Shown: positions 30,503 through 45,744 of the stretch, piece by piece
Position numbering within the stretch: the first letter of the stretch is position 1
Layout of the letters: every line of letters begins with the position of its first letter
Assembly: GCA_964187785.1 (NCBI GenBank)
Contig: OZ076417.1
Location: 2,418,001 to 2,482,000, forward strand
DNA: 64,000 nucleotides
Direction of reading: 5' to 3'
Source: Amphiscolops sp. MND2022
Lineage: Eukaryota
Translations under genes and position numbers: made by a program
The notes under the pieces: model-generated
Told to the model about the DNA's origin: nothing
Seen by the model: the letters and a program-made list of their open reading frames with translations, nothing else
The model's database searches: none

Positions 30503-30860
30503 TGTGTGCTGCTGCTTTACTTGATGACAAGTGAGTACAGTAAAAACTTCAATTCGCAAATTTGTTGTTCTCCAAATTGGTCAGTGCCAAATCATGAACG
30601 ACGGCACGTAGTGGAACTAAGAAAGGAGTAGAGACAGTTGTGATCAAAGGTTTTGAATGAAGAAAGACGAAGGGTCAAATCAGTTGACTTATTTTGCTCG
30701 AGGTAGTTAATTTAGAAATGTAGATTTGAGGAGTTAGTACCTCAAAAGCATTTGCAAAGGTCAGTACTTCAAGGAAGACGACTAACTGTGCTGCAGTGCC
30801 TGGTCTTTTTAAGAAAAAGCAGAGGTGAAGAAGTCATATTATGCGCCTGAGGTGGTTATG
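30503..30860 (+). repeat. Host sequence (Kelch exon end + intron) duplicated directly on both sides of the BEL array; second copy at 44334-44690
   Basis: About 358-bp direct repeat with about 5 differences. Confidence 0.95.
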
Positions 30861-31089
30861 TGTTGAGATCTAAAGAAGAAAAATTCGAAGCTCGCATGTC
30901 ACTTTAACAGCAATCTGAACGTTTCAACCAATCATATTCATTCACGTGTAACTTCTCTAAACATTTGCTTTTCCATTCAATTTCAATCACACTTTTGTCA
31001 AACTCTCACTAGAAAGTTGATTCTTTTCCCTCTTCCTCTCTTCAACTCAATAGAAAACTGAGATTCATTCAAATCTCAATTAGTAAACA
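30861..31089 (+). repeat. BEL LTR (first copy)
   Basis: TGTTGAGATC...GTAAACA, followed by a PBS at 31095. Confidence 0.9.
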
Positions 31090-31094
31090 TTTAT

Positions 31095-31116
31095 TGGTGC
31101 CGCTATCGACCCGGGA
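31095..31116 (+). promoter_or_regulatory. BEL primer-binding site, tRNA-Phe-like with a central bulge (also at 37082)
   Basis: TGGTGCCG-CTATCG-ACCCGGGA versus the tRNA-Phe PBS TGGTGCCG-AA-ACCCGGGA, recalled from memory. Confidence 0.6.
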
Positions 31117-31124
31117 ACAGAAAC

Positions 31125-32823
31125 ATGACAGAAGCATTACGACGAACAAGGGCAGGACACATCGGTACAATTACCTGTGTCGAAAACAAAACGAGGCAGA
31201 TCTTGGAAAAAGATCCATCGTTACTTACAACTCTAGAGTTAGCTACATTACGATGCAGTTTAACAAAATGCAAGGAACAACAAACAAAACTAGAAACGTT
31301 GAATCAACAAATTAACGAAGCAATGACAGCAGCAGAAGTAGAGGAAGATGCATTTCAAGAGGAAAGAAATCCAGTAGATGAAAATGATCTAAAAATCTGT
31401 ACAATCATCGATGCGTTGCAATTCGTCATCGACGCCGCAGCCACCAGGCCGGAAACAACTGAGGATGCTGCAGAACCAACAGCACCACCTGCACCAGAGT
31501 ATAGCCACGCGCCCATTGGACCGAAAAAGCCCACTACAAAATCTCGCACCGTTCTTCGACAAAGAATTCAACGTTATTCGGGTCGGAGCTCGACTCGGAC
31601 AATCACCATACTGCGAAAACAAGAAATTTCCAGTATTAATCTCAAAGAACTCATCACTAATACCACTCATCATTCGTCATTTTCATGAAGCGTCGCTTCA
31701 TGGAGGGGGGCAACTAACCCTCAATTTGATTCGTCAAGAGTTTTGGATTGTCAATGCCAAGCCATTAGTCAATCAATTATCAAAGAATGCATCACATGCT
31801 TTCGATTTAATACAACTCCTCCAGTCCAACTAATGGCCGATCTTCCAACCGAGAGAGTAACCCCTTCACGACCTTTCACACACTGTGGAATTGACTTTGC
31901 CGGACACTTCCTAGTGAAGAATGGAGAAACAGAGAACAAAGTCTACATAGCCATCTTCGTTTGTATGAATACAAAAGCAGTGCATATGGAGTTAGTCTCA
32001 AGTCTCTCAAAAAATGACTGCATAATGGCTCTGAATCGCTTCATTGCCCGCAGAGGAATGCCTGCTAAAATACTTAGCGATAATGGAACCAACTTCTTGG
32101 GAGCAAGGAATGATCTGATCAAGCTCAACGTACCACTAGACAAAACTGATCGTGACAATTCATTGATAACATTTGTCAATCAACGAAATTGTGAATGGAT
32201 CACAATCCCACCACGAGCTCCACATTTTGGTGAATCTGGGAAGCCGCAGTGAAAAGCATGAAGCGACACTTGCGGAGAGTGGTTGGCAAACAAATCTTTT
32301 CATATGAAGAATTTCTCACAATCATCAATCAAGTTGAAGCTGCCTTGAACTCCAGGCCGATATCACCTCTCTCAAATGATCCCAATGATCCACTAGCCCT
32401 CACTCCAGGCCATTTCCTCATTGGAGACACTCTAATGTCAATGCCGTCAGGAGCACCTTCAAAGAGCAATCCAGTACAAAGATTCCGTCTAGTCAAAAAG
32501 ATTCAAGAAGATTTCTGGAAGTCTTGGAAAAGAGATTACTTGACCGAGCTTCAAATACGAAAAAATGGTTCGTGAATGGCCCAGAAATCCGCGTTGGTGA
32601 TATGGTGCTGCTAGCAGAAGACAATGAAGCACCACTGCACTGGAAAACAGGCCGAGTGATCGAGATTTACTCTGGCAATGATGACATCACACGAGTCTGC
32701 AAAGTCAAGACCACTTCCTCGACTTTGATACGACCCGTCGTGAAACTACGAAAGCTACCGATTACCTCTGAATCAGCTACCACCCCTGCGACAACTGCCG
32801 GTGTTGGATACGTTAGTGTCTGA
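31125..32823 (+). pseudogene. Deleted BEL copy: gag N-terminus fused out of frame to integrase
   Basis: The junction at 31510-31512 (CGC microhomology) removes the sequence corresponding to 38451-41918. Confidence 0.9.
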
Positions 32824-32872
32824 CATCATAATTCACTTACCTTTCATTGAAAGAGGCCACTCTTCCTCAAAC

Positions 32873-33425
32873 AAAGTGGCACCCCTATGCCCCAAATGAA
32901 TTTTCGGGCAGAATTTCCTTACCACCGCTTCAGTTAGATATTCATACAAACGATTTTACTTATGAAAGCGTTTGCATGACATTTTATTTAACTGCAGTTC
33001 AGCTATTTCATCATTAATTACCTAGCAAAGGGTCCACTTTTTGTTAAACAAAGTGGCACCCCCATGCCCCAATTCAAAATTTGGGCAGAATATCGGTACT
33101 ACAGCTTCGCCTGTATCCTGCCGGTTCCAAATTTGGCATCGTTGCGCTTCTAGCCCTATTAGTTATCTCTTATGTTTGAAAAACTTACCTGAATTGGACT
33201 AAAAGTTCGTCGTTCGACTTCATACTAAGTGGCACCCCAGTGCCCCAAGGCAGATTATGACCTCGAAATTGCACTCAGCACCTCGCAAATTTACCCCTGC
33301 GATTCGAATTATGCCTCAACCCTGCCTTATTAACGCAAGTATTCGTTGTACTCATTTCAACAATTAATTCTCTGTTACTTTGTATTATACTTCGCAATAC
33401 AAAGTGGCACCCCGGTGCCCCATAA
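32873..33425. repeat. Degenerate 4 x ~176-bp array anchored by AAGTGGCACCCC(N)2-3TGCCCC; also at 35045-35600 and 43281-43830
   Basis: Anchors at 32873, 33050, 33226 and 33401. The sequence between anchors is highly diverged. Confidence 0.85.
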
Positions 33426-33660
33426 CGAGTTATGGAGCAAAGATTGCCTTGATTACCCTCCCTAATACTCATTACGCCTCGTACTCATGCCTTTCGGATC
33501 ATCGTTGAAGAAAAAACAGCAAAAAACAGTTTATTTGTATTTGTATTGAAACTTTCATTACATTACCTGTTGCATTATTTCAAGTTTACATGCAATGATT
33601 TGAAAGATTTACCAAATATAGTGCTTACCTATCGAGGAGCAGCTATTGCTTGTATAGCCA

Positions 33661-34995
33661 CACCAGAGTATAGCCACGCGCCCATTGGACCGAAAAAGCC
33701 CACTACAAAATCTCGCACCGTTCTTCGACAAAGAATTCAACGTTATTCGGGTCGGAGGTCGACTCGGACAATCACCATACTGCGAAAACAAGAAATTTCC
33801 AGTATTAATCTCAAAGAACTCATCACTAGTACCACTCATCATTCGTCATTTTCATGAAGCGTCGCTTCATGGAGGGGGGCAACTAACCCTCAATTTGATT
33901 CGTCAAGAGTTTTGGATTGTCAATGCCAAGCCATTAGTCAATCAATTATCAAAGAATGTATCACATGCTTTCGATTTAATACAACTCCTCCAGTCCAACT
34001 AATGGCCGATCTTCCAACCGAGAGAGTAACCCCTTCACGACCTTTCACACACTGTGGAATTGACTTTGCCGGACACTTCCTAGTGAAGAATGGAGAAACA
34101 GAGAACAAAGTCTACATAGCCATCTTCGTTTGTATGAATACAAAAGCAGTGCATATGGAGTTAGTCTCAAGTCTCTCAAAAAATGACTGCATAATGGCTC
34201 TGAATCGCTTCATTGCCCGCAGAGGAATGCCTGCTAAAATACTTAGCGATAATGGAACCAACTTCTTGGGAGCAAGGAATGATCTGATCAAGCTCAACGT
34301 ACTACTAGACAAAACTGATCGTGACAATTCATTGATAACATTTGTCAATCAACGAAGTTGTGAATGGATCACAATCCCACCACGAGCTCCACATTTTGGT
34401 GGAATCTGGGAAGCCGCAGTGAAAAGCATGAAGCGACACTTGCGGAGAGTGGTTGGCAAACAAATCTTTTCATATGAAGAATTTCTCACAATCATCAATC
34501 AAGTTGAAGCTGCCTTGAACTCCAGGCCGATATCACCTCTCTCAAATGATCCCAATGATCCACTAGCCCTCACTCCAGGCCATTTCCTCATTGGAGACAC
34601 TCTAATGTCAATGCCGTCAGGAGCACCTTCAAAGAGCAATCCAGTACAAAGATTCCGTCTAGTCAAAAAGATTCAAGAAGATTTCTGGAAGTCTTGGAAA
34701 AGAGATTACTTGACCGAGCTTCAAATACGAAAAAAAATGGTTCGTGAATGGCCCAGAAATCCGCGTTGGTGATTTGGTGCTGCTAGCAGAAGACAATGAA
34801 GCACCACTGCACTGGAAAACAGGCCGAGTGATCGAGATTTACTCTGGCAATGATGACATCACACGAGTCTGCAAAGTCAAGACCACTTCCTCGACTTTGA
34901 TACGACCCGTCGTGAAACTACGAAAGCTACCGATTACCTCTGAATCAGCTACCACCCCTGCGACAACTGCCGGTGTTGGATACGTTAGTGTCTGA
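33661..34995 (+). pseudogene. Second deleted BEL integrase copy
   Basis: Same gag-to-IN junction. ORFs 33912-34772 and 34744-34995. Confidence 0.9.
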
Positions 34996-35802
34996 CATCA
35001 TAATTCACTTACCTTTCATTGAAAGAGGCCACTCTTCCTCAAACAAAGTGGCACCCCTATGCCCCAAATGAATTTTCGGGCAGAATTTCCTTACCACCGC
35101 TTCAGTTAGATATTCATACAAACGAATTTACTTATGAAAGCGTTTGCATGACATTTTATTTAACTGCAGTTCAGCTATTTCATCATTAATTACCTAGCAA
35201 AGGGTCCACTTTTTGTTAAACAAAGTGTCACCCCCATGCCCCAATTCAAAATTTGGGCAGAATTTCGGTACTACAGCTTCGCCTGTATCCTGCCGGTTCC
35301 AAATTTGGCATCTTTGCGCTTCTAGCCCTATTAGTTATCTCTTATGTTTGAAAAACTTACCTGAATTGGACTAAAAGTTCGTCATTCGACTTCATACTAA
35401 GTGGCACCCCAGTGCCACTAGGCAGATTATGACCTCGAAATTGCACTCAGCACCTCGCAAATTTACCCCTGCGATTCGAATTATGCCTCAACCCTGCCTT
35501 ATTAACGCAAGTATTCGTTGTACTCATTTCAACAATTAATTCTCTCAGTTACTTTGTATTATACTTCGCAATACAAAGTGGCACCCCGGTGCCCCATAAC
35601 GAGTTATGGAGCAAAGATTGCCTTGATTACCCTCCCTAATACTCATTACGCCTCGTACTCATGCCTTTCGGATCATCGTTGAAGAAAAAACAGCAAAAAA
35701 CAGTTTATTTGCATTTGTATTGAAACTTTCATTACATTACCTGTTGCATTATTTCAAGTTTACATGCAATGATTTGAAAGATTTACCAAATATAGTGCTT
35801 AC

Positions 35803-36800
35803 CTATCGAGGAGCAGCTATTGCTTGTCGCCTGCCACCACAACGACCCTTGCCAGTCGCCTTCCTCCACTCCTCCGAGACCTCCTGTTGTGATGTTGGCA
35901 ACTCGATGTACCACATCGAGCAAGCATACCCCTCCTCCACAATTGTTATGACACTGTGGGCCCAGGCATACGGTAAGTACAGTGTCTTGGAGCTGTCTAG
36001 AACACAGTACAGAATTTGCTTCTTCTGCGCTGGCGACAGATTCCGCAGAAACCGCACAGCCTCAGAAAAGCCCTCCTCAGAGTCGTTCGCCCCTGCAAAC
36101 CTCTCTAGCTGCGACCCAGTGTTTCCAGGATGACACAGCAACCATAGCTTTCTCCCCCTTACTAATGATAGCAAGGAGTCGGCTGTGTCCAAGAGATCAT
36201 AGTGGAAGGCACGAAAAGATGAACCCTCCACTTGAATTACTCGAATTGGCTGCTGGACACTCCCCGGCCACGAACTCACTGCCTCACCATCCTTCAATTG
36301 CCGGTCCCCTCGGGTCTTGCTGGGATGATCCGGACAATTTCTGGCCGCAGTGCCCTCTGTTAATCTCGAAGTGGCCACGTAGTCCACCGATGTGGTCTCC
36401 AACAGCTCCTTCTACAATAAAACATTCAGATAAACCCACAATTCAATCAAGTGTATTTGCAGTACTACTTCAACCAGATCGAAGTTTTCTCGAAGTTTAT
36501 TTATATACCTTTACATCCTCTGGCAAATCCACGAATTGGCCCTCCAACACAGCTGCCTCCCTCCTACTGGACAGGACCTGCTCTGGGGACTTTACTGACA
36601 ATGGAGTCAGACCGACAGCGCCGCTGACGACATCACCCCAGAACCCCTCGAGCGTCTCTGGATCCAGCCTCTGTTTTCACCCTCCTCGATGGCCTCTCTC
36701 TCAACTGCCCAATTGGTGGCCGACGACGTGCTCGCCCCTCCCTCTCCCGATTCTCCGAATCGCGGTCAACTTCAACTGTAAGATGATCATATTCACTCAT
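35803..36800 (-). CDS. Antisense, spliced JmjC-domain (Fe/2-oxoglutarate dioxygenase, histone-demethylase-like) gene inside the BEL 3' region
   Basis: Exon 36411-35803 is open for 202 codons: FHYD (H at 36204, D at 36198), LVRGRKLWLL, CVL...TLYLPYAWAHSVIT (H at 35958). Intron 36508-36412 (AAG|GTATA...TTGTAG|AAG). The upstream exon from 36808 has ATG 36800 but needs one frameshift. Confidence 0.8.
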
Positions 36801-36849
36801 GACTCGATCTGAAAGATTAAAGTAAAATTATACTTCAAGGCCGCCGGAA

Positions 36850-37076
36850 TGTTGAGATCTAAAGAAGAAAAATTCGAAGCTCGCATGTCACTTTAACAGC
36901 AATCTGAACGTTTCAACCAATCATATTCATTCACGTGTAACTTCCCTAAACATTTGCTTTTCCATTCAATTTCATTCACACTTTTGTCAAACTCTCACTA
37001 GAAAGTTGATTCTTTTCCCTCTTCCTCTCTTCAACTCAATAGAAAACAGATTCATTCAAAGCTCAATTAGTAAACA
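36850..37076 (+). repeat. BEL LTR (second copy, shared between tandem units)
   Basis: Preceded by PPT-like AAGGCCGCCGGAA and followed by the PBS and gag. About 5 differences from the first LTR. Confidence 0.9.
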
Positions 37077-37111
37077 TTTATTGGTGCCGCTATCGACCCG
37101 GGAACAGAAAC

Positions 37112-38162
37112 ATGACAGAAGCATTACGACGAACAAGGGCAGGACACCGGTACAATTACCTGTGTCGAAAACAAAACGAGGCAGATCTTGGAAAAAGATC
37201 CATCGTTACTTACAACTCTAGAGTTAGCTACATTACGATGCAGTTTAACAAAATGCAAGGAACAACAAACAAAACTAGAAACGTTGATCAACAAATTAAC
37301 GAAGCAATGACAGCAGCAGAAGTAGAGGAAGATGCATTTCAAGAGGAAAGAAATCCAGTAGATGAAAATGATCTAAAAATCTGTACAATCATCGATGCGT
37401 TGCAATTCGTCATCGACGCCGCAGCCACCAGGCCGGAAACAACTGAGGATGCTGCAGAACCAACAGCACCACCTGCACCAGAGTATAGCCACGCGCCCAT
37501 TGGACCGAAAAAGCCCACTACAAAATCTCGCACCGTTCTTCGACAAAGAATTCAACGTTATTCGGGTCGGAGCTCGACTCGGACAATCACCATACTGCGA
37601 AAACAAGAAATTTCCAGTATTAATCTCAAAGAACTCATCACTAATACCACTCATCATTCGTCATTTTCATGAAGCGTCGCTTCATGGAGGGGGGCAACTA
37701 ACCCTCAATTTGATTCGTCAAGAGTTTTGGATTGTCAATGCCAAGCCATTAGTCAATCAATTATCAAAGAATGCATCACATGCTTTCGATTTAATACAAC
37801 TCCTCCAGTCCAACTAATGGCCGATCTTCCAACCGAGAGAGTAACCCCTTCACGACCTTTCACACACTGTGGAATTGACTTTGCCGGACACTTCCTAGTG
37901 AAGAATGGAGAAACAAAGAACAAAGTCTACATAGCCATCTTCGTTTGTATGAGTACAAAAGCAGTGCATATGGAGTTAGTCTCAAGTCTCTCAAAAGATG
38001 ACTGCATAATGGCGCTGAATCGCTTCATTGCCCGCAGAGGAATGCCTGCTAAAATACTTAGCGATAATGGAACCAACTTCTTGGGAGCAAGGAATGATCT
38101 GATCAAGCTCAACGTACTACTAGACAAAACTGATCGTGACAATTCATTGATAACATTTGTCA
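37112..38162 (+). pseudogene. Third deleted BEL copy (gag N-terminus/integrase), truncated by a switch back to gag
   Basis: Same CGC junction at ~37496. An 11-nt filler CAACATTCAAT lies at 38163-38173. Confidence 0.88.
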
Positions 38163-38173
38163 CAACATTCAAT

Positions 38174-41100
38174 GAGTTAGCTACATTACGATGCAGTTTA
38201 ACAAAATGCAAGGAACAACAAACAAAGCTAGAAACGTTGAATCAACAAATTAACGAAGCAATGACAGCAGCAGAAGTAGAGGAAGATGCATTTCAAGAGG
38301 AAAGAAATCGAGTAGATGAAAATGATCTAAAAATCTGTACAATCATCGATGCGTTGCAATTCGTCATCGACGCCGCAGCCGCCAGGCCGGAAACAACTGA
38401 GGATGCTGCAGAACCAACAGCACCACCTGCACCAGAGTATAGCCACGCGCTCAAGCTTCCTAAACTATCATTACCAACTTTCTCTGGAAAATACAGTGAA
38501 TGGCTTCCATTCTTTGATCTTTTCATGGAAACTGTGGATGCCAACAAATCCCTGAGTGATATTCAAAAGCTCCAGTACTTGAAGACATCACTCAAAGATC
38601 AGCCTGCAAGATTACTTGCTCACTTACCAGCAACAACCGCTAACTATGAAGTCGCCAAGGATCTTCTAAAAGAGCGTTATGCAAACAAGAGGATGATTAT
38701 CCGCACACACTTGGAAGCTATAATCAAGTATCCGCCACTACAACGTGAGTCATCAGATCAATTGAGAAAGTTAGCTACTGTTTTTCTTGAAAATTCCTGG
38801 GCATTGTTAGCTCTGGGTCAAGACTCTAGTGAATGTGACTATTTTTGGGTTTATATAATCTCAGAAAAGTTAGACCCTGAAACACGCAGACAATGGGAAC
38901 TCAGCAACACAAGCGACGAGCCACAGACAATGAAAGAGCTGACAAAGTTTTTGGAAGAAAGAGCACGAGCCCTCGACTTCTCAAATTCACCAGCAGCAAC
39001 CAAACAAGACAAAAGTAAAAGAGAATTACAAAGTTATCACTCGCGCGAAAATACTATTCTCGACTGTCCAAAATGCAACGGAGCGCATGCCGTTTACAGC
39101 TGTGAGCAGTTCAAAGACCTTTCAATAGAAGAAAAGGTTGACTTTGTCAAATTAAAAAATTTGTGTTTCAATTGTCTGAGGTCCGGGCACTCTATTCAAG
39201 AGTGTAAGTCCAAATCTACTTGCCGCACATGCAAAAAACGGCACAATACGCTGCTCCACCGCCCTACGATGCCATCTAGCCACCAAGCAAGCTCGCAATC
39301 ATTTCTGGGGCATGGGGGTGCCACTTCATGTGACCTCACTCTGTTGCCAACAGCAATGGTACAAATCAAAACAAACTCTGGCAAGGTCGCATCACTTCGT
39401 GCACTCCTAGATAGTGGTTCCCAGATCAGCTGCATTACAAAAAAGAGCCGCGACCGCTTGGGGTTGAAATCACGACAAGCAAGTGTCAGTGTCACAGGTA
39501 TTGGTGGAAATCTAACAGCAAAGTCAGGATCAATTGTGTCAATTCAACTCACTCCGCCAAATCATCAGACAATTTCCACAACAGCTATTGTACTAGATCG
39601 TGTTGCAAACCAGCTGCCAAGCTATCCAGCAACCAACCGAATCCTCACTAGCATGAAGTACATCACTTGGGCAGATCCCAACTTCACACGCCCTGGTGAG
39701 GTAGACATGATACTAGGAGCGGATGTCTACGAACAAATCGTCGGACAAGAAAAAAGGACTATCACAAAAGATCTATTCGCTCGCAACACACTGTTTGGAT
39801 GGGTTGTATCTGGCCGTACAAAGCAGCAATCATCGAGTTCCATTCCAGTCAACAGCTTTCACATCTCATTAGATGACCAACTCAAAAAATTTTGGGAATT
39901 GGAAGAATTACCAACAACTAAACACTTGACGCCCGAGGAAACAGCATGTGAAAAACTCTACGAAGAGACGACCAAATTCATCGACAATCGCCTGGTAGTG
40001 AATCTTCCATTCAAGAAGTCAGTCGAGCTAGGTGACAGTCTCGAGCAAGCCAAGAGGAGATTCAGCTACCTGGAAAGAAGACTTGATGCCAAACCAGATC
40101 TACGCAAAAGGTATTAGGCCTTTATCCAAGAATTCCTTGATATGAATCACATGGAGGAAGTACCACAACACCAAATGCAACGTCCTGCGAACCAATGCTA
40201 CTACTTACCCCATCACTGCGTCTTTAAAGAAGACTCAACAACAACCAAGTTGAGAGTAGTCTTCGATGGGTCAGCAAAAACCAGCAACGGTATCTCGATC
40301 AACGAAGCTCTCATGGTCGGACCAGTCGTCCAAGGTGACCTCTTCGCCATCATCACACGATTTCGGTTCTACAAAATCGCACTGACAGGAGATGTAGAAA
40401 AAATGTACCGACAAGTAGGACTCAGAGAAGAAGACAGAGATTTTCATAGAATCTTGTGGAGAGAGACATCATCATCACCATTGAAGCACTTTCGTCTGAC
40501 GCGAGTGATCTACGGTGTATCATGTGCAGCTCATCTCTCAACAAGAACACTCGTCGAAATAGCAAAGCGAACTCAAAAACCTCATGTGGCCAAAGCTCTC
40601 AAACATTCCTTCTATGTTGATGACTATCTTGGAGGAGCTAACTCTCTTGAAGAAGCCCACCAGCTCCTCACAGATCTTCGTCAAGAACTCCTACACTACG
40701 GGTTTCCCCTCAGAAAGTGGTCTTCTAACAGTCAAGATCTCCTAAAGTCCATCGACAAGGATCTACGTACTGAAAACGACGAATTGAAACTCTTCAGTGA
40801 AGATTTCAAAGTGAAGGCTCTGGGAATCAAATGGACACCGAATTCTGACGAATTCATTTTCAAAAGTTCATTGGACCCACCGCAACAGCTAACTAAGCGC
40901 AATTTGCTCTCAGCCACGTCAAAACTATTTGACCCACTAGGTTGGCTAGCACCCATAGTCATTCAATTCAAAATTCTCATGCAATAAACTTGGGTCAGAG
41001 GACTCAATTGGGACGACGAGGTTCCCGATGATCTCAAGCAGCTCTGGACAGAACTGCGCTCAGAACTTCCAGCACTCAATCAACTAAAGATCCCACGATG

Positions 41101-43231
41101 TGTGATGAAGAACACAATTGCCAATCTACAACTACATTTCTTCTCTGATGCGTCAGAGAAAGCGTACGCAGCAGTCGTATATTCCAGAATCACAGACGAC
41201 ATTGGACACGTCAACGTCACTCTACTTTGATCGAAAACACGAGTAGCTCCAGTAAAAACCGTCTCACTACCACGACTCGAACTTTGTGGTACCGAATTAG
41301 CCGCCAAACTTGCATCAACAATGGTGACAACTCTAGAAATCATCAAATCTGACATCTCACTTCACGCATGGACCGACTCAACCATCGTGCTACAATGGTT
41401 AGCACAATTACCAAAAACATGGTCAACCTTTGTTGCTAATGGAGTTTCACATTCAAACAGTGCTTCCCCGATCAGCTTGGAAACACGTCTCATCCATAGA
41501 CAATCCTGCCGATCTAGCTTCACGCGGATGCATTGCCTCACAATTGGTCCTGACGGAACTGTGGTGGAAAGGACCTAATTGGTTGTCAGGTGCTGAAACA
41601 TCATGGCCAAATAGCTTTCCTGAAGTTACCAGAGATGTACCCGAACAGAGAACCAATGCGCAAATCCTCACAACCACCACAGCAATCAAAGAAAATGCCA
41701 ATTTCATCGACTTCAAGCGATACAGTAATTACAATAAATTACTCCACGTGACAGCACACGTCATTCACTTCGCGAAGAAGCTCAAAAAGCACGTGCAAAC
41801 TCCAAAAGTCGACTCACCCCTTCATCCAGTGAACATTGCTAAGGCGAAATTCTTGCTACTTCATCATGACCAATTACAGAACCTTCCAAAGGAATACATA
41901 ACTTTACAATCAGATCGCCCATTGGACCGAAAAAGCCCACTACAAAATCTCGCACCGTTCTTCGACAAAGAATTCAACGTTATTCGGGTCGGAGGTCGAC
42001 TCGGACAATCACCATACTGCGAAAACAAGAAATTTCCAGTATTAATCTCAAAGAACTCATCACTAGTACCACTCATCATTCGTCATTTTCATGAAGCGTC
42101 GCTTCATGGAGGGGGGCAACTAACCCTCAATTTGATTCGTCAAGAGTTTTGGATTGTCAATGCCAAGCCATTAGTCAATCAATTCATCAAAGAATGCATC
42201 ACATGCTTTCGATTTAATACAACTCCTCCAGTCCAACTAATGGCCGATCTTCCAACCGAGAGAGTAACCCCTTCACGACCTTTCACACACTGTGGAATTG
42301 ACTTTGCCGGACACTTCCTAGTGAAGAATGGAGAAACAGAGAACAAAGTCTACATAGCCATCTTCGTTTGTATGAGTACAAAAGCAGTGCATATGGAGTT
42401 AGTCTCAAGTCTCTCAAAAGATGACTGCATAATGGCTCTGAATCGCTTCATTGCCCGCAGAGGAATGCCTGCTAAAATACTTAGCGATAATGGAACCAAC
42501 TTCTTGGGAGCAAGGAATGATCTGATCAAGCTCAACGTACTACTAGACAAAACTGATCGTGACAATTCATTGATAACATTTGTCAATCAACGAAATTGTG
42601 AATGGATCACAATCCCACCACGAGCTCCACATTTTGGTGGAATCTGGGAAGCCGCAGTGAAAAGCATGAAGCGACACTTGCGGAGAGTGGTTGGCAAACA
42701 AACCTTTTCATATGAAGAATTTCTCACAATCATCAATCAAGTTGAAGCTGCCTTGAACTCCAGGCCGATATCACCTCTCTCAAATGATCCCAATGATCCA
42801 CTAGCCCTCACTCCAGGCCATTTCCTCATTGGAGACACTCTAATGTCAATGCCGTCAGGAGCACCTTCAAAGAGCAATCCAGTACAAAGATTCCGTCTAG
42901 TCAAAAAGATTCAAGAAGATTTCTGGAAGTCTTGGAAAAGAGATTACTTAACCGAGCTTCAAATACGAAAAAATGGTTCGTGAATGGCCCAGAAATCCGC
43001 GTTGGTGATTTGCTGCTGCTAGCAGAAGACAATGAAGCACCACTGCACTGGAAAACAGGCCGAGTGATCGAGATTTACTCTGGCAATGATGACATCACAC
43101 GAGTCTGCAAAGTCAAGACCGCTTCCTCGACTTTGATACGACCCGTCGTGAAACTACGAAAGCTACCGATTACCTCTGAATCAGCTACCACCCCTGCGAC
43201 AACTGACGGTGTTGGATACGTTAGTGTCTGA
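38174..43231 (+). pseudogene. Near-complete BEL/Pao gag-pol (gag, CCHC x3, PR, RT, RH, IN) with a few stops and frameshifts
   Basis: ORFs ending at 40117, then 40142-40987, 41430-42983 and 42932-43231, carrying the BEL motifs listed above. Confidence 0.93.
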
Positions 43232-44035
43232 CATCATAATTCACTTACCTTTCATTGAAAGAGGCCACTCTTCCTCAAACAAAGTGGCACCCCTATGCCC
43301 CAAATGAATTTTCGGGCAGAATTTCCTTACCACCGCTTCAGTTAGATATTCATACAAACGAATTTACTTATGAAAGCGTTTGCATGACATTTTATTTAAC
43401 TGCAGTTCAGCTATTTCATCATTAATTACCTAGCAAAGGGTCCACTTTTTGTTAAACAAAGTGGCACCCCCATGCCCCAATTCAAAATTTGGGCAGAATT
43501 TCGGTACTACAGCTTCGCCTGTATCCTGCCGGTTCCAAATTTGGCATCTTTGCGCTTCTAGCCCTATTAGTTATCTCTTATGTTTGAAAAACTTACCTGA
43601 ATTGGACTAAAAGTTCGTCGTTCGACTTCATACTAAGTGGCACCCCAGTGCCCCAAGGCAGATTATGACCTCGAAATTGCACTCAGCACCTCGCAAATTT
43701 ACCCCTGCGATTCGAATTATGCCTCAACCCTGCCTTATTAACGCAAGTATTCGTTGTACTCATTTCAACAATTAATTCTCTGTTCCTTTGTATTATACTT
43801 CGCAATACAAAGTGGCACTCCGGTGCCCCATAACGAGTTATGGAGCAAAGATTGCCTTGATTACCCTCCCTAATACTCATTACGCCTCGTACTCATGCCT
43901 TTCGGATCATCGTTGAAGAAAAACAGCAAAAAACAGATTCTTTGCATTTGTATTGAAACTTTCATTACATTACCTGTTGCATTATTTCAAGTTTACATGC
44001 AATGATTTGAAAGATTTACCAAATATAGTGCTTAC

Positions 44036-44333
44036 CTATCGAGGAGCAGCTATTGCTTGTCGCCTGCCACCACAACGACCCTTGCCAGTCGCCTTCCTCC
44101 ACTCCTCCGAGACCTCCTGTTGTGATGTTGGCAACTCGATGTACCACATCGAGCAAGCATACCCCTCCTCCACAATTGCTATGACACTGTGGGCCCAGAC
44201 ATACGGTAAGTACAGTGTCTTGGAGCTGTCTAGAACACAGTACAGAATTTGCTTCTTCTGCGCTGGCGACAGATTCCGCAGAAACCGCACAGCCTCAGAA
44301 AAGCCCTCCTCAGAGTCGTTCGCCCCTGCAAAC
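44036..44333 (-). pseudogene. Truncated second copy of the JmjC C-terminal exon
   Basis: Near-identical to 35803-36100 (YVWAHSVIA versus YAWAHSVIT). Confidence 0.85.
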
Positions 44334-45744
44334 TGTGTGCTGCTGCTTTACTTGATGACAAGTGAGTACAGTAAAAACTTCAATTCGCAAATTTGTGTTC
44401 TTCAATTTGGTCAGTGCCAAATCATGAACGATGGCACGTAGTGGAACTAAGAAAGGAGTAGAGACAGTTGTGATCAAAGGTTTTGAATGAAGAAAGACGA
44501 CGGGTCAAATCAGTTGACTTATTTTGCTCGAGGTAGTTAATTTAGAAATGTAGATTTGAGGAGTTAGTACCTCAAAAGCATTTGCAAAGGTCAGTACTTC
44601 AAGGAAGACGACTAACTGTGCTGCAGTGCCTGGTCTTTTTAAGAAAAAGCAGAGGTGAAGAAGTCATTTTATGCGCCTGAGGTGGTTATGTTTCAAAATG
44701 GTGTAAAAAAAAAACATTTTTAACCGAGAAATAAGTTACGAAGATGTTGAAGCTACGATGTGTAATTTTCGAGTATTGACCAAAGTTCGAAAGATGGTTT
44801 CAGTGCTTTTCTCATAATAGCTGACGGACCAATTGACCTTTGGATGTTGTTTCAATCGCCATCTAGAAGACACCTGACAAATTTGAAATGATAATCGAAA
44901 GTTGCTGAGGAGACGTTTTATCAAGATTGAAAACATTTCTCTTGTCACAAACGTTAGATCCATTTTCAAATTGCCTGTTCTTCGGGAATCGGGCCTTTCT
45001 CACATACTAATAGAGAAAAAACACGACAGGTTTTAGAAAACGCTACAGAGTAAATGAACAGTGTGCACAGTGACACATTATATCGTAGTAGCCTTTGAAT
45101 TATTTTAATGAAATAACTTTTGGGCCACCGTTTTCCAGGATGTTTGTGTCAGGAGGATTTACAACTAATGGACGTTACAGTGCAACTGCCTCTGTGGAGA
45201 TGCTTGACTTGATGACTGCAACCGCAGAGTGGACGCAGTGTGCCTCTTTGCATGAGAAGAGAGCGCATAATGCAATGATTGCATTCAAAAGCGAACTGTT
45301 TGTGTTTGGAGGTTGGAATGGTACAAACAAGAATCGAGAAACGTACACGTGGACTCTCGAAACCGCCAGGAAGTTGAATGTTTTTGCTTGTCTGCTTTTT
45401 AAACCGTTTTTATATTGATCAATTTTTAATCTCAGCGAAAAATCTTGATGTTGAAATATTAGGGTAAAAGTAGAGATGTTTTCGTTTCGAGGTTAACGTA
45501 CGTAAATGAAGAACTTTTGTTAGTAAGAATGAACAAACGTGGTATTTTTAGTCGGCGTTTTCGAAGAAAATCCCGACTCTTACAGTGACTAGTTTTTTTT
45601 CGTCAGTTCAACGCGAAACGTCCACTTTTTGTGCATTAATGCACATTTACCAACTTTTACCATATGTACTTAGTACTTCATTTTCAACGCATCCAAAGCC
45701 TCTAACATGAGATAAAAAGCCATTCCAAAGCAGAAGGGTCCACT

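Follow-up and report, generated by a model that had tools for sequence, protein, structure and literature searches.

Why a retrotransposon should carry, on the strand opposite to its own genes, a reading frame that resembles a chromatin-modifying enzyme is the question raised by a locus in the genome of Amphiscolops sp. MND2022. The window analysed here comprises 64,000 nucleotides (contig OZ076417.1 of assembly GCA_964187785.1, positions 2,418,001 to 2,482,000 of the forward strand) and contains copies of a BEL/Pao long terminal repeat (LTR) retrotransposon. A sequence-only reading of the window had pointed to a minus-strand frame of 202 open codons (36411-35803) with the layout of a JmjC domain, lying after the stop codon of the pol frame (34995) and before an LTR (from 36850), and had proposed a captured dioxygenase that acts as a transposon-encoded anti-silencing factor. 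Coordinates, motifs and position proved to be as described, and the frame (partial reading SSFRAFHYDLLDTADSLLSLVRGRKLWLL...SKTLYLPYAWAHSVITIVEEGYACSMWY) contains FHYD, RGRKLW and LPYAWAHSVIT. We conclude that it very probably belongs to an antisense, two-exon, 300-codon gene for a JmjC-only Fe(II)/2-oxoglutarate (2OG) oxygenase, which is inherited with the BEL/Pao element and has been kept across a deep clade, with its core under purifying selection.

What had escaped the earlier reading is that the frame is the second exon of a larger predicted gene, and that the window copy of this gene is frameshifted in its first exon. Two stretches conserved at the protein level in diverged families make up one open frame, which starts with an ATG and ends at a GT donor; together with the 202-codon frame it would form a two-exon antisense gene of 300 codons between pol and the 3′ LTR (Table 1). 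The two halves of exon 1 lie in different frames in the window copy because 2 nt are missing (GTGAAA--ACAG, between 36673 and 36675). An alignment of 13 family sequences revealed that this deletion is private to the window copy, both bases being present in the other 12, which are ~98% identical, and collapsed read contigs of the sequenced sample also contain the two bases ('TA' behind 36673). A tiny intron and a programmed frameshift, which might have accounted for the change of frame, were thereby ruled out. Judged by its sequence, the window copy is a fresh pseudogene, predicted to be unable to make protein because of the frameshift in exon 1.

We then asked whether the gene is part of the element. 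When the 1.07-Gb genome was searched in six frames, exon 2 had at least 150 matches. The 12 other family sequences are colinear with the window through pol, the ~800-bp spacer, the JmjC region and the LTR up to 37076, and they represent 11 further independent loci, since two of them (L006 and L012) count as one locus. Four full-length copies, each contained within one fetched stretch, were found to measure 7.34-7.51 kb, to be flanked by 5-bp target-site duplications (TSDs) and to have LTR pairs identical at 225-228 of 228 positions (98.7-100%). One of these copies contains a single gag-pol frame of 1757 amino acids, in which Pfam recognizes DUF1759, an aspartyl protease, RVT_1, Peptidase_A17 (Pao), Integrase_H2C2 and DUF5641. 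The polyprotein domains, the short TG..CA LTRs and the 5-bp TSDs identify the carrier as a BEL/Pao LTR retrotransposon, and its family is young and has been recently active. We also found a 2.4-kb internally deleted derivative consisting of an LTR, the primer-binding site, the last ~40 nt of pol, the spacer, the JmjC gene and an LTR, with its own 5-bp TSD (TGAGC). The derivative appears in records L006/L041 (C2:53.02 Mb) and L012/L042 (scaffold C727), and we rejected the reading of these as two independent insertions, since flanks that are 99.3% identical indicate one locus assembled twice, or two alleles. The JmjC gene is intact in one version and has a stop in exon 2 in the other.

The same association was evident when pol ends were compared with JmjC matches. 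Among the matches listed, a complete exon 2 follows at least 13 of 16 near-identical pol ends, and the three without one are the two rearranged copies in the window and one other place. At ~70% DNA identity, again among the matches listed, a convergent JmjC match lies within ~1.3 kb of at least 19 of the 24 pol ends. Public contigs of other assemblies contain the same convergent arrangement of pol end and JmjC gene in relatives at 55%, 49%, ~35% and ~24-30% identity. Taken over this genome and other assemblies, carriers include BEL/Pao families whose JmjC proteins share only 25-60% identity. That the JmjC segment travels with the element had been argued earlier from its recurrence in three copies of the 3′ region within the window. 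The recurrence is literally true but weaker than was implied, as one of the three is complete, one is a half (44036-44333) and one is a 25-bp remnant (33629-33653); it is the other genomic copies that show the segment to travel with the element, and in the four full-length copies it lies inside TSD-flanked insertions.

Selection was gauged by comparing clean subfamily pairs. By the Nei-Gojobori method, exon 2 had a ratio of nonsynonymous to synonymous rates (dN/dS) of 0.19-0.31 (Fisher p 6e-5 to 9e-8), and integrase gave 0.32 for the same element pair. Exon 1 is clearly constrained at depth (p <= 2e-4). The JmjC catalytic core is under purifying selection, like integrase. Three findings together strongly support the conclusion that this is an element-borne accessory gene, fixed and selected within a BEL/Pao clade, and not a one-off insertion: it is found within TSD-flanked copies from independent loci, has been retained in diverged lineages and is subject to purifying selection.

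The intron has a history of its own. Its position and phase are shared by families with ~50-57% protein identity (L016, L017, L021, L023, L025, L043 and L045), and its boundaries are GT..AG in six of these seven lineages (L016, L017, L021, L025, L043 and L045), the donor in L023 being AT. The distant relatives P0023 and P0030 are intronless single frames of 283-293 amino acids, and an intron-free gene is kept at 24-35% identity. Many intact intronless frames of 309-328 amino acids, including some of 327-328, 43-66% identical to P0030, are present in the same genome (for example C13:2907994-2908857 and C3:34336274-34337140), and some of them are arranged in tandem (C10:40045239 and 40051619; C3:57295449-57301359). 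An intron in a retroelement should persist only if it is left unspliced in the genomic RNA, and this expectation fits the antisense orientation of the JmjC gene, through which the intron would survive passage through the sense genomic RNA. The conservation of the GT..AG boundaries speaks indirectly for splicing of a putative antisense transcript.

The identity of the encoded protein was approached by sequence and by structure. The Pfam model JmjC_2 matched the window frame weakly (11.7 bits, cut-off 22) and several relatives had no Pfam match; PF13621 is annotated on close database relatives. A single-sequence search of solved structures returned weak matches to PHF8 and JMJD7 only, and a protein language-model search placed the window protein among JmjC/Cupin_8 clusters (score 0.96). 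A search of 1.84 billion representatives with the family profile retrieved 41 proteins and no named host JmjC enzyme; capture of the dioxygenase from a host is plausible, as had been suggested, but this search did not identify a donor. The AlphaFold2 model of the full-length relative P0023 (predicted local distance difference test, pLDDT, 90.1; predicted template modelling score, pTM, 0.86) forms one domain over residues ~35-283, and the part encoded by exon 1 therefore belongs to the predicted fold. The model of window exon 2 reached a pLDDT of 81.8, with the core above 84. In a Foldseek search with the P0023 model, the top matches were all JmjC proteins (JMJD5, FIH, KDM7A, PHF2 and KDM2A). 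The motifs FHxD, G-R-K and W-x-H align with the iron and 2OG residues 'FHID', 'GEK' and 'GWIHAV' of PHF8. Among 36 family members, H70 is conserved in 32, D72 in 34, K88 in 35 and H152 in 32 (exon-2 numbering), and the position of the Tyr that contacts 2OG is occupied by Ser, Thr or Cys. The HxD, the distal His and the 2OG Lys of the sequence-only reading are thus conserved in 32-35 of the 36 members. According to profiles and both AlphaFold2 models, the protein has the JmjC fold, a double-stranded beta-helix, and belongs to the Fe(II)/2OG oxygenase superfamily with an HxD...H triad.

Within this superfamily, the sequence profile and the model of the window exon place the JmjC domain nearest to the KDM7 group (PHF8, KDM7A and PHF2), in agreement with the KDM2/KDM7(PHF8) assignment made from the sequence. 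The family profile matched PDB sequences of PHF8 (E 7.6e-9), KDM7A (5e-7), PHF2 (3e-6) and the C. elegans enzyme ceKDM7A (9e-4), and JMJD7, KDM2A, JMJD6 and NO66 all had E >= 0.04. The best 22 Foldseek matches of the window exon 2 model were all PHF2, PHF8 or KDM7A. Structural scores for the superfamily are closer together, with VIA-align Z values of 14.3 for PHF2, 14.2 for PHF8, 13.9 for KDM2A and 13.8 each for ceKDM7A and FIH, up to 14.3 over 220 residues, which amount to ties. In the JmjC domain, the HxD...H residues and the 2OG lysine of the element protein align with those of PHF8. However, KDM7 proteins possess an N-terminal PHD finger, which reads H3K4me3 and positions the JmjC domain, whereas the element protein is a PHD-less protein of ~300 amino acids with 10-20% identity to them. 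KDM7 enzymes are furthermore encoded by host genes and have a Thr before the first His, whereas the element protein is encoded by a retrotransposon and has Arg there, and its activity is a prediction.

What use might a retroelement make of such a protein? KDM7 enzymes remove H3K9me2, H3K27me2 and H4K20me1, and because its nearest relatives remove these marks, the most economical use for the element would be to counter silencing by methylated histones. We propose that the JmjC protein would be made from an antisense, spliced transcript starting in or near the 3′ LTR; that it would enter the nucleus, both of its termini being basic; that it would remove repressive histone lysine methylation (H3K9me2, H3K27me2 or H4K20me1) in the manner of KDM7/PHF8; and that this demethylation would weaken host silencing of the element. 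Argued by analogy with the enzyme's relatives, this scenario as a whole may hold, with chances that we put somewhat below even. Its most specific form, in which the enzyme of a deep animal BEL/Pao clade would be a catalytically active histone lysine demethylase, made from a spliced antisense transcript, and would erase the H3K9/H3K27 methylation that the small-RNA-guided silencing of the host deposits, is put forward more tentatively still. An element-borne gene with an anti-silencing role is nevertheless our best explanation overall, and we judge the balance for and against it to be about equal.

Several results weigh against this explanation. On the window frame, Pfam Cupin_8 reached E 7.4e-6 and 26.5 bits against a cut-off of 27.4, so that of the profile and modelling checks suggested by the earlier reading, the models and the family profile supported a JmjC fold but Pfam fell short by 0.9 bit. 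JMJD5 and FIH lead the Foldseek list for the full-length model, and structurally they tie with the demethylases. In PHF8, KDM2A and FIH, a Thr that lies three residues ahead of the first His makes contact with 2OG; 28 of the 36 members have Arg at this position. Pfam found no PHD or other reader or targeting domain (Tudor, CXXC) in the window exon or the full-length relatives, and small JmjC-only proteins are mostly hydroxylases. Spliced joints were not seen in the four sequencing runs found, which come from one sample, are none of them recorded as RNA and yielded collapsed, DNA-like contigs. Exon 1 is weakly constrained between close subfamilies (omega 0.7-1.0), and shared substitutions within the young family (nonsynonymous to synonymous, N:S, 7:3) are too few to show selection.

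These results bear first on the possibility that the element-borne JmjC protein is a protein or RNA hydroxylase, like JMJD5, JMJD6, JMJD7, FIH or TYW5, and that it would aid replication by a route outside chromatin, its target being a tRNA or a protein of the host or the element. We consider this unlikely, although it is the most serious of the alternatives. FIH, JMJD5, JMJD6, JMJD7 and TYW5 are JmjC-only hydroxylases of similar size, with a single domain and comparable structural scores, and the element protein shares with them a JmjC-only architecture of ~300 amino acids in which no chromatin reader was found. Besides the lead of JMJD5 and FIH for the full-length model and the closeness of FIH to PHF8 (Z 13.8 versus 14.2), the structure search also places the Swiss-Prot models of TYW5 and JMJD6 at high ranks. 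The sequence profile, in contrast, separates the two groups, since only the KDM7/PHF proteins matched the element family significantly and the JmjC-only hydroxylases did not (E >= 0.04), and the best 22 structural matches of the window exon are all PHF2, PHF8 or KDM7A. Since the intact copy encodes gag-pol as one frame, a TYW5-like effect on frameshifting would have no obvious use.

The JmjC fold might also serve without catalysis, as a protein-binding scaffold that disturbs heterochromatin in the absence of demethylation. A precedent exists in Epe1 of S. pombe, a JmjC protein that limits heterochromatin (PMC6576747), and the change from Thr to Arg close to the first iron ligand is a departure from the active KDM2/7 enzymes. 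However, the residues that bind iron and the lysine that binds 2OG are still present in 32-35 of 36 diverged members, which speaks for retained catalysis, and we regard a non-catalytic, Epe1-type factor as improbable.

More improbable again is neutral cargo, a piece of a host gene captured once and of no use to the element. The state of individual copies might suggest it. The intact gene (ATG, exon 1, GT..AG, exon 2) is present in 6 of the 13 family sequences, and the window copy and 6 of the 12 others are broken, each differently: two have different 2-nt deletions, one has a 1-nt deletion and a stop, one has a donor changed from GT to GA, and three have different stops. Among private substitutions N:S is 26:8, where the neutral ratio of sites is 684:216, and the recent shared substitutions cannot be told from neutral ones. 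Every defect, however, is private to one copy, and the near-neutral ratio of private changes points to decay after insertion. Nor would neutral cargo be expected to keep its location, and the position and phase of its intron, down to ~50% protein identity, and to persist in intronless form at 24-35%, with a catalytic core as constrained as integrase. Separately, we observed that two copies already broken and belonging to different subgroups (L009 and L013) each have CAG in place of CAC as the codon of the distal iron-ligand His (H152Q; alignment column 896, window ~35956). Finally, the suggestion that the JmjC gene is a host gene or another transposon nested beside the BEL/Pao element, for which one might cite the hard-to-read boundaries of a rearranged cluster at the window locus, is refuted by its location inside the TSD-flanked LTR pairs of four full copies and inside the TSD-flanked 2.4-kb derivative, and we give it next to no credence.

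Returning to the element-borne JmjC gene, its carriers may be more varied than the copies described so far. On one contig of another assembly (L052:6139-18653), the distant member P0040 (Cupin_8 E 2.9e-5) lies antisense in a unit of ~12.5 kb. Direct, LTR-like repeats 12 kb apart mark the ends of this unit, which also contains a Gypsy-type pol (RVT_1, RT_RNaseH, rve) as well as unassigned open reading frames (ORFs) of 434 and 771 amino acids. JmjC cargo may therefore not be limited to BEL/Pao, on this single Gypsy-type example, in which nesting is possible. The intronless relative P0023 (283 amino acids) is encoded identically on seven short contigs (L046-L048) of Tara Oceans marine metagenomes from several samples, and pol is not present on these contigs, short as they are. 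The occurrence of P0023 in several marine samples suggests that a carrier of the gene family is abundant in ocean plankton samples.

The immediate surroundings of the window gene proved to be rearranged. Self-comparison of the region 28-48 kb resolved three element pieces (Table 1), and a 359-bp direct duplication (30503-30861 and 44334-44691, 98.3% identical) flanks the whole cluster and is absent from all other element copies fetched. As no other copy contains the 359-bp segment, it represents duplicated flanking DNA, and the cluster arose by local rearrangement or duplication and not by three insertions. For the same reason we rejected the reading of 44334-44691 as a second form of the element's 3′ end that lacks JmjC; the segment belongs to the local flank, of which a duplicate lies at each end of the cluster. 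In the third piece (37221-38453), an integrase segment (37494-38162, equivalent to 41916-42585) is inserted in the gag start, which is itself duplicated (37221-37499 equals 38174-38453), and the same gag-start/pol junction recurs at ~31510. The recurrence of this junction suggests that one deleted derivative was copied locally. A primer-binding site (TGG...) lies at 37082, after the LTR shared by the second and third pieces.

Table 1 Features of the JmjC-like gene, its BEL/Pao carrier and the rearranged cluster in the window (strand relative to the window; exons and intron as predicted).
Feature	Position	Strand	Remarks
Exon 1 of JmjC-like gene	36800-36509	-	ATG at 36800-36798; 98 codons in intact copies; 292 nt here
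Intron	36508-36412	-	97 nt, GTATAT...TTGTAG, phase 0
Exon 2	36411-35803	-	202 codons and stop (35805-35803); JmjC core; H70, D72, K88, H152 in exon-2 numbering
Candidate poly(A) signal AATAAA	35709-35704	-	96 nt past the JmjC stop codon on the gene strand; motif only
Non-coding spacer, ~800 bp	34996-35802	+	Between pol stop and JmjC stop; includes 82-bp imperfect repeat pair
3′ part of BEL/Pao pol (integrase and DUF5641)	33661-34995	+	Copy with complete JmjC region; pol frame stop at 34995
LTR, TG..CA, 227 bp	36850-37076	+	3′ LTR of JmjC-bearing copy and 5′ LTR of next cluster copy
Truncated second exon 2, C-terminal 99 codons	44036-44333	-	Equivalent to 35803-36100; cut at 36100 equivalent, joined to 359-bp local duplication
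25-bp remnant of exon 2 3′ end	33629-33653	-	Rearrangement junction; homology ends at 33653, equivalent to 35827
Element piece 1	30862-33653		LTR, gag start, then jump to 3′ part of pol
Element piece 2	33661-37076		3′ part of pol, spacer, complete JmjC region, LTR
Element piece 3	36850-44333		Begins at shared LTR; internally duplicated gag-pol; cut inside exon 2 at 36100 equivalent

Both ends of the antisense gene contain further sequence features. A TATAA motif lies 32 nt upstream of the JmjC ATG. The interval 36801-36849 contains a pyrimidine-rich ...TTTCAG directly before the ATG and CCTTGAAGTAT beside the LTR, and both are kept in L016, L017, L021 and L023, families with ~55% protein identity. 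Either sequence might act as a promoter or splice acceptor of the antisense gene, or might be the complement of the polypurine tract; as an acceptor, the ...TTTCAG would serve a 5′ exon within the LTR. Downstream of the gene, two imperfect 82-bp repeats (35022-35103 and 35199-35280) lie in the spacer, 79% identical and 177 bp apart; the pair is present in every copy and is also seen in the window at 32850/33027 and 43258/43435. This pair likely falls in the 3′ untranslated region of the antisense gene.

Few ways are known in which transposons escape silencing; examples are the VANC proteins of plants and the TET/JBP dioxygenases that fungal DNA transposons encode. The VANC proteins of Arabidopsis VANDAL transposons are anti-silencing, sequence-specific DNA-binding proteins with no known enzymatic activity. 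Like the protein proposed here, VANC is encoded by a transposon and is credited, by proposal or by demonstration, with lifting the host's epigenetic silencing of that transposon's own family; however, VANC belongs to a plant DNA transposon and has no homology to the JmjC protein. Fungal DNA transposons (Kyakuja-Dileera-Zisupton and others) and Helitrons encode TET/JBP dioxygenases, and the authors of a recent survey state that no retrotransposon encodes TET/JBP (PMC12730594). What these elements have in common with the present one is that each brings an Fe(II)/2OG dioxygenase from a class of epigenetic erasers, presumed to work against silencing of the element. Their enzymes, however, belong to a different superfamily, which acts on the bases of DNA, and the elements themselves are DNA transposons or Helitrons of fungi. 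Extra and antisense ORFs of LTR retrotransposons have been described as plant aORFs (PMC7264820), in Retand (PMC11963269) and in bdelloid rotifer elements (PMC5408684). There, as here, an extra gene lies between pol and the 3′ LTR, is sometimes antisense and is kept within lineages. Our literature searches turned up no JmjC case among those elements, whereas the gene described here combines a clear enzymatic fold with a conserved intron and an animal BEL/Pao carrier. Full-text literature searches found no published JmjC gene in BEL/Pao or in any LTR retrotransposon, which accords with the statement of the sequence-only reading that no such BEL/Pao element had been described.

If the anti-silencing role is true, this would be the first retrotransposon-encoded chromatin eraser. 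The gene encodes a compact (~300 amino acids) natural JmjC enzyme, by prediction, whose substrate can be determined, and its predicted structure shows how a retroelement can carry an intron-bearing gene when that gene is antisense. With a conserved, selected JmjC gene inside young, TSD-flanked BEL/Pao elements, one can put directly to the test whether an animal retroelement edits chromatin or proteins to its own advantage.

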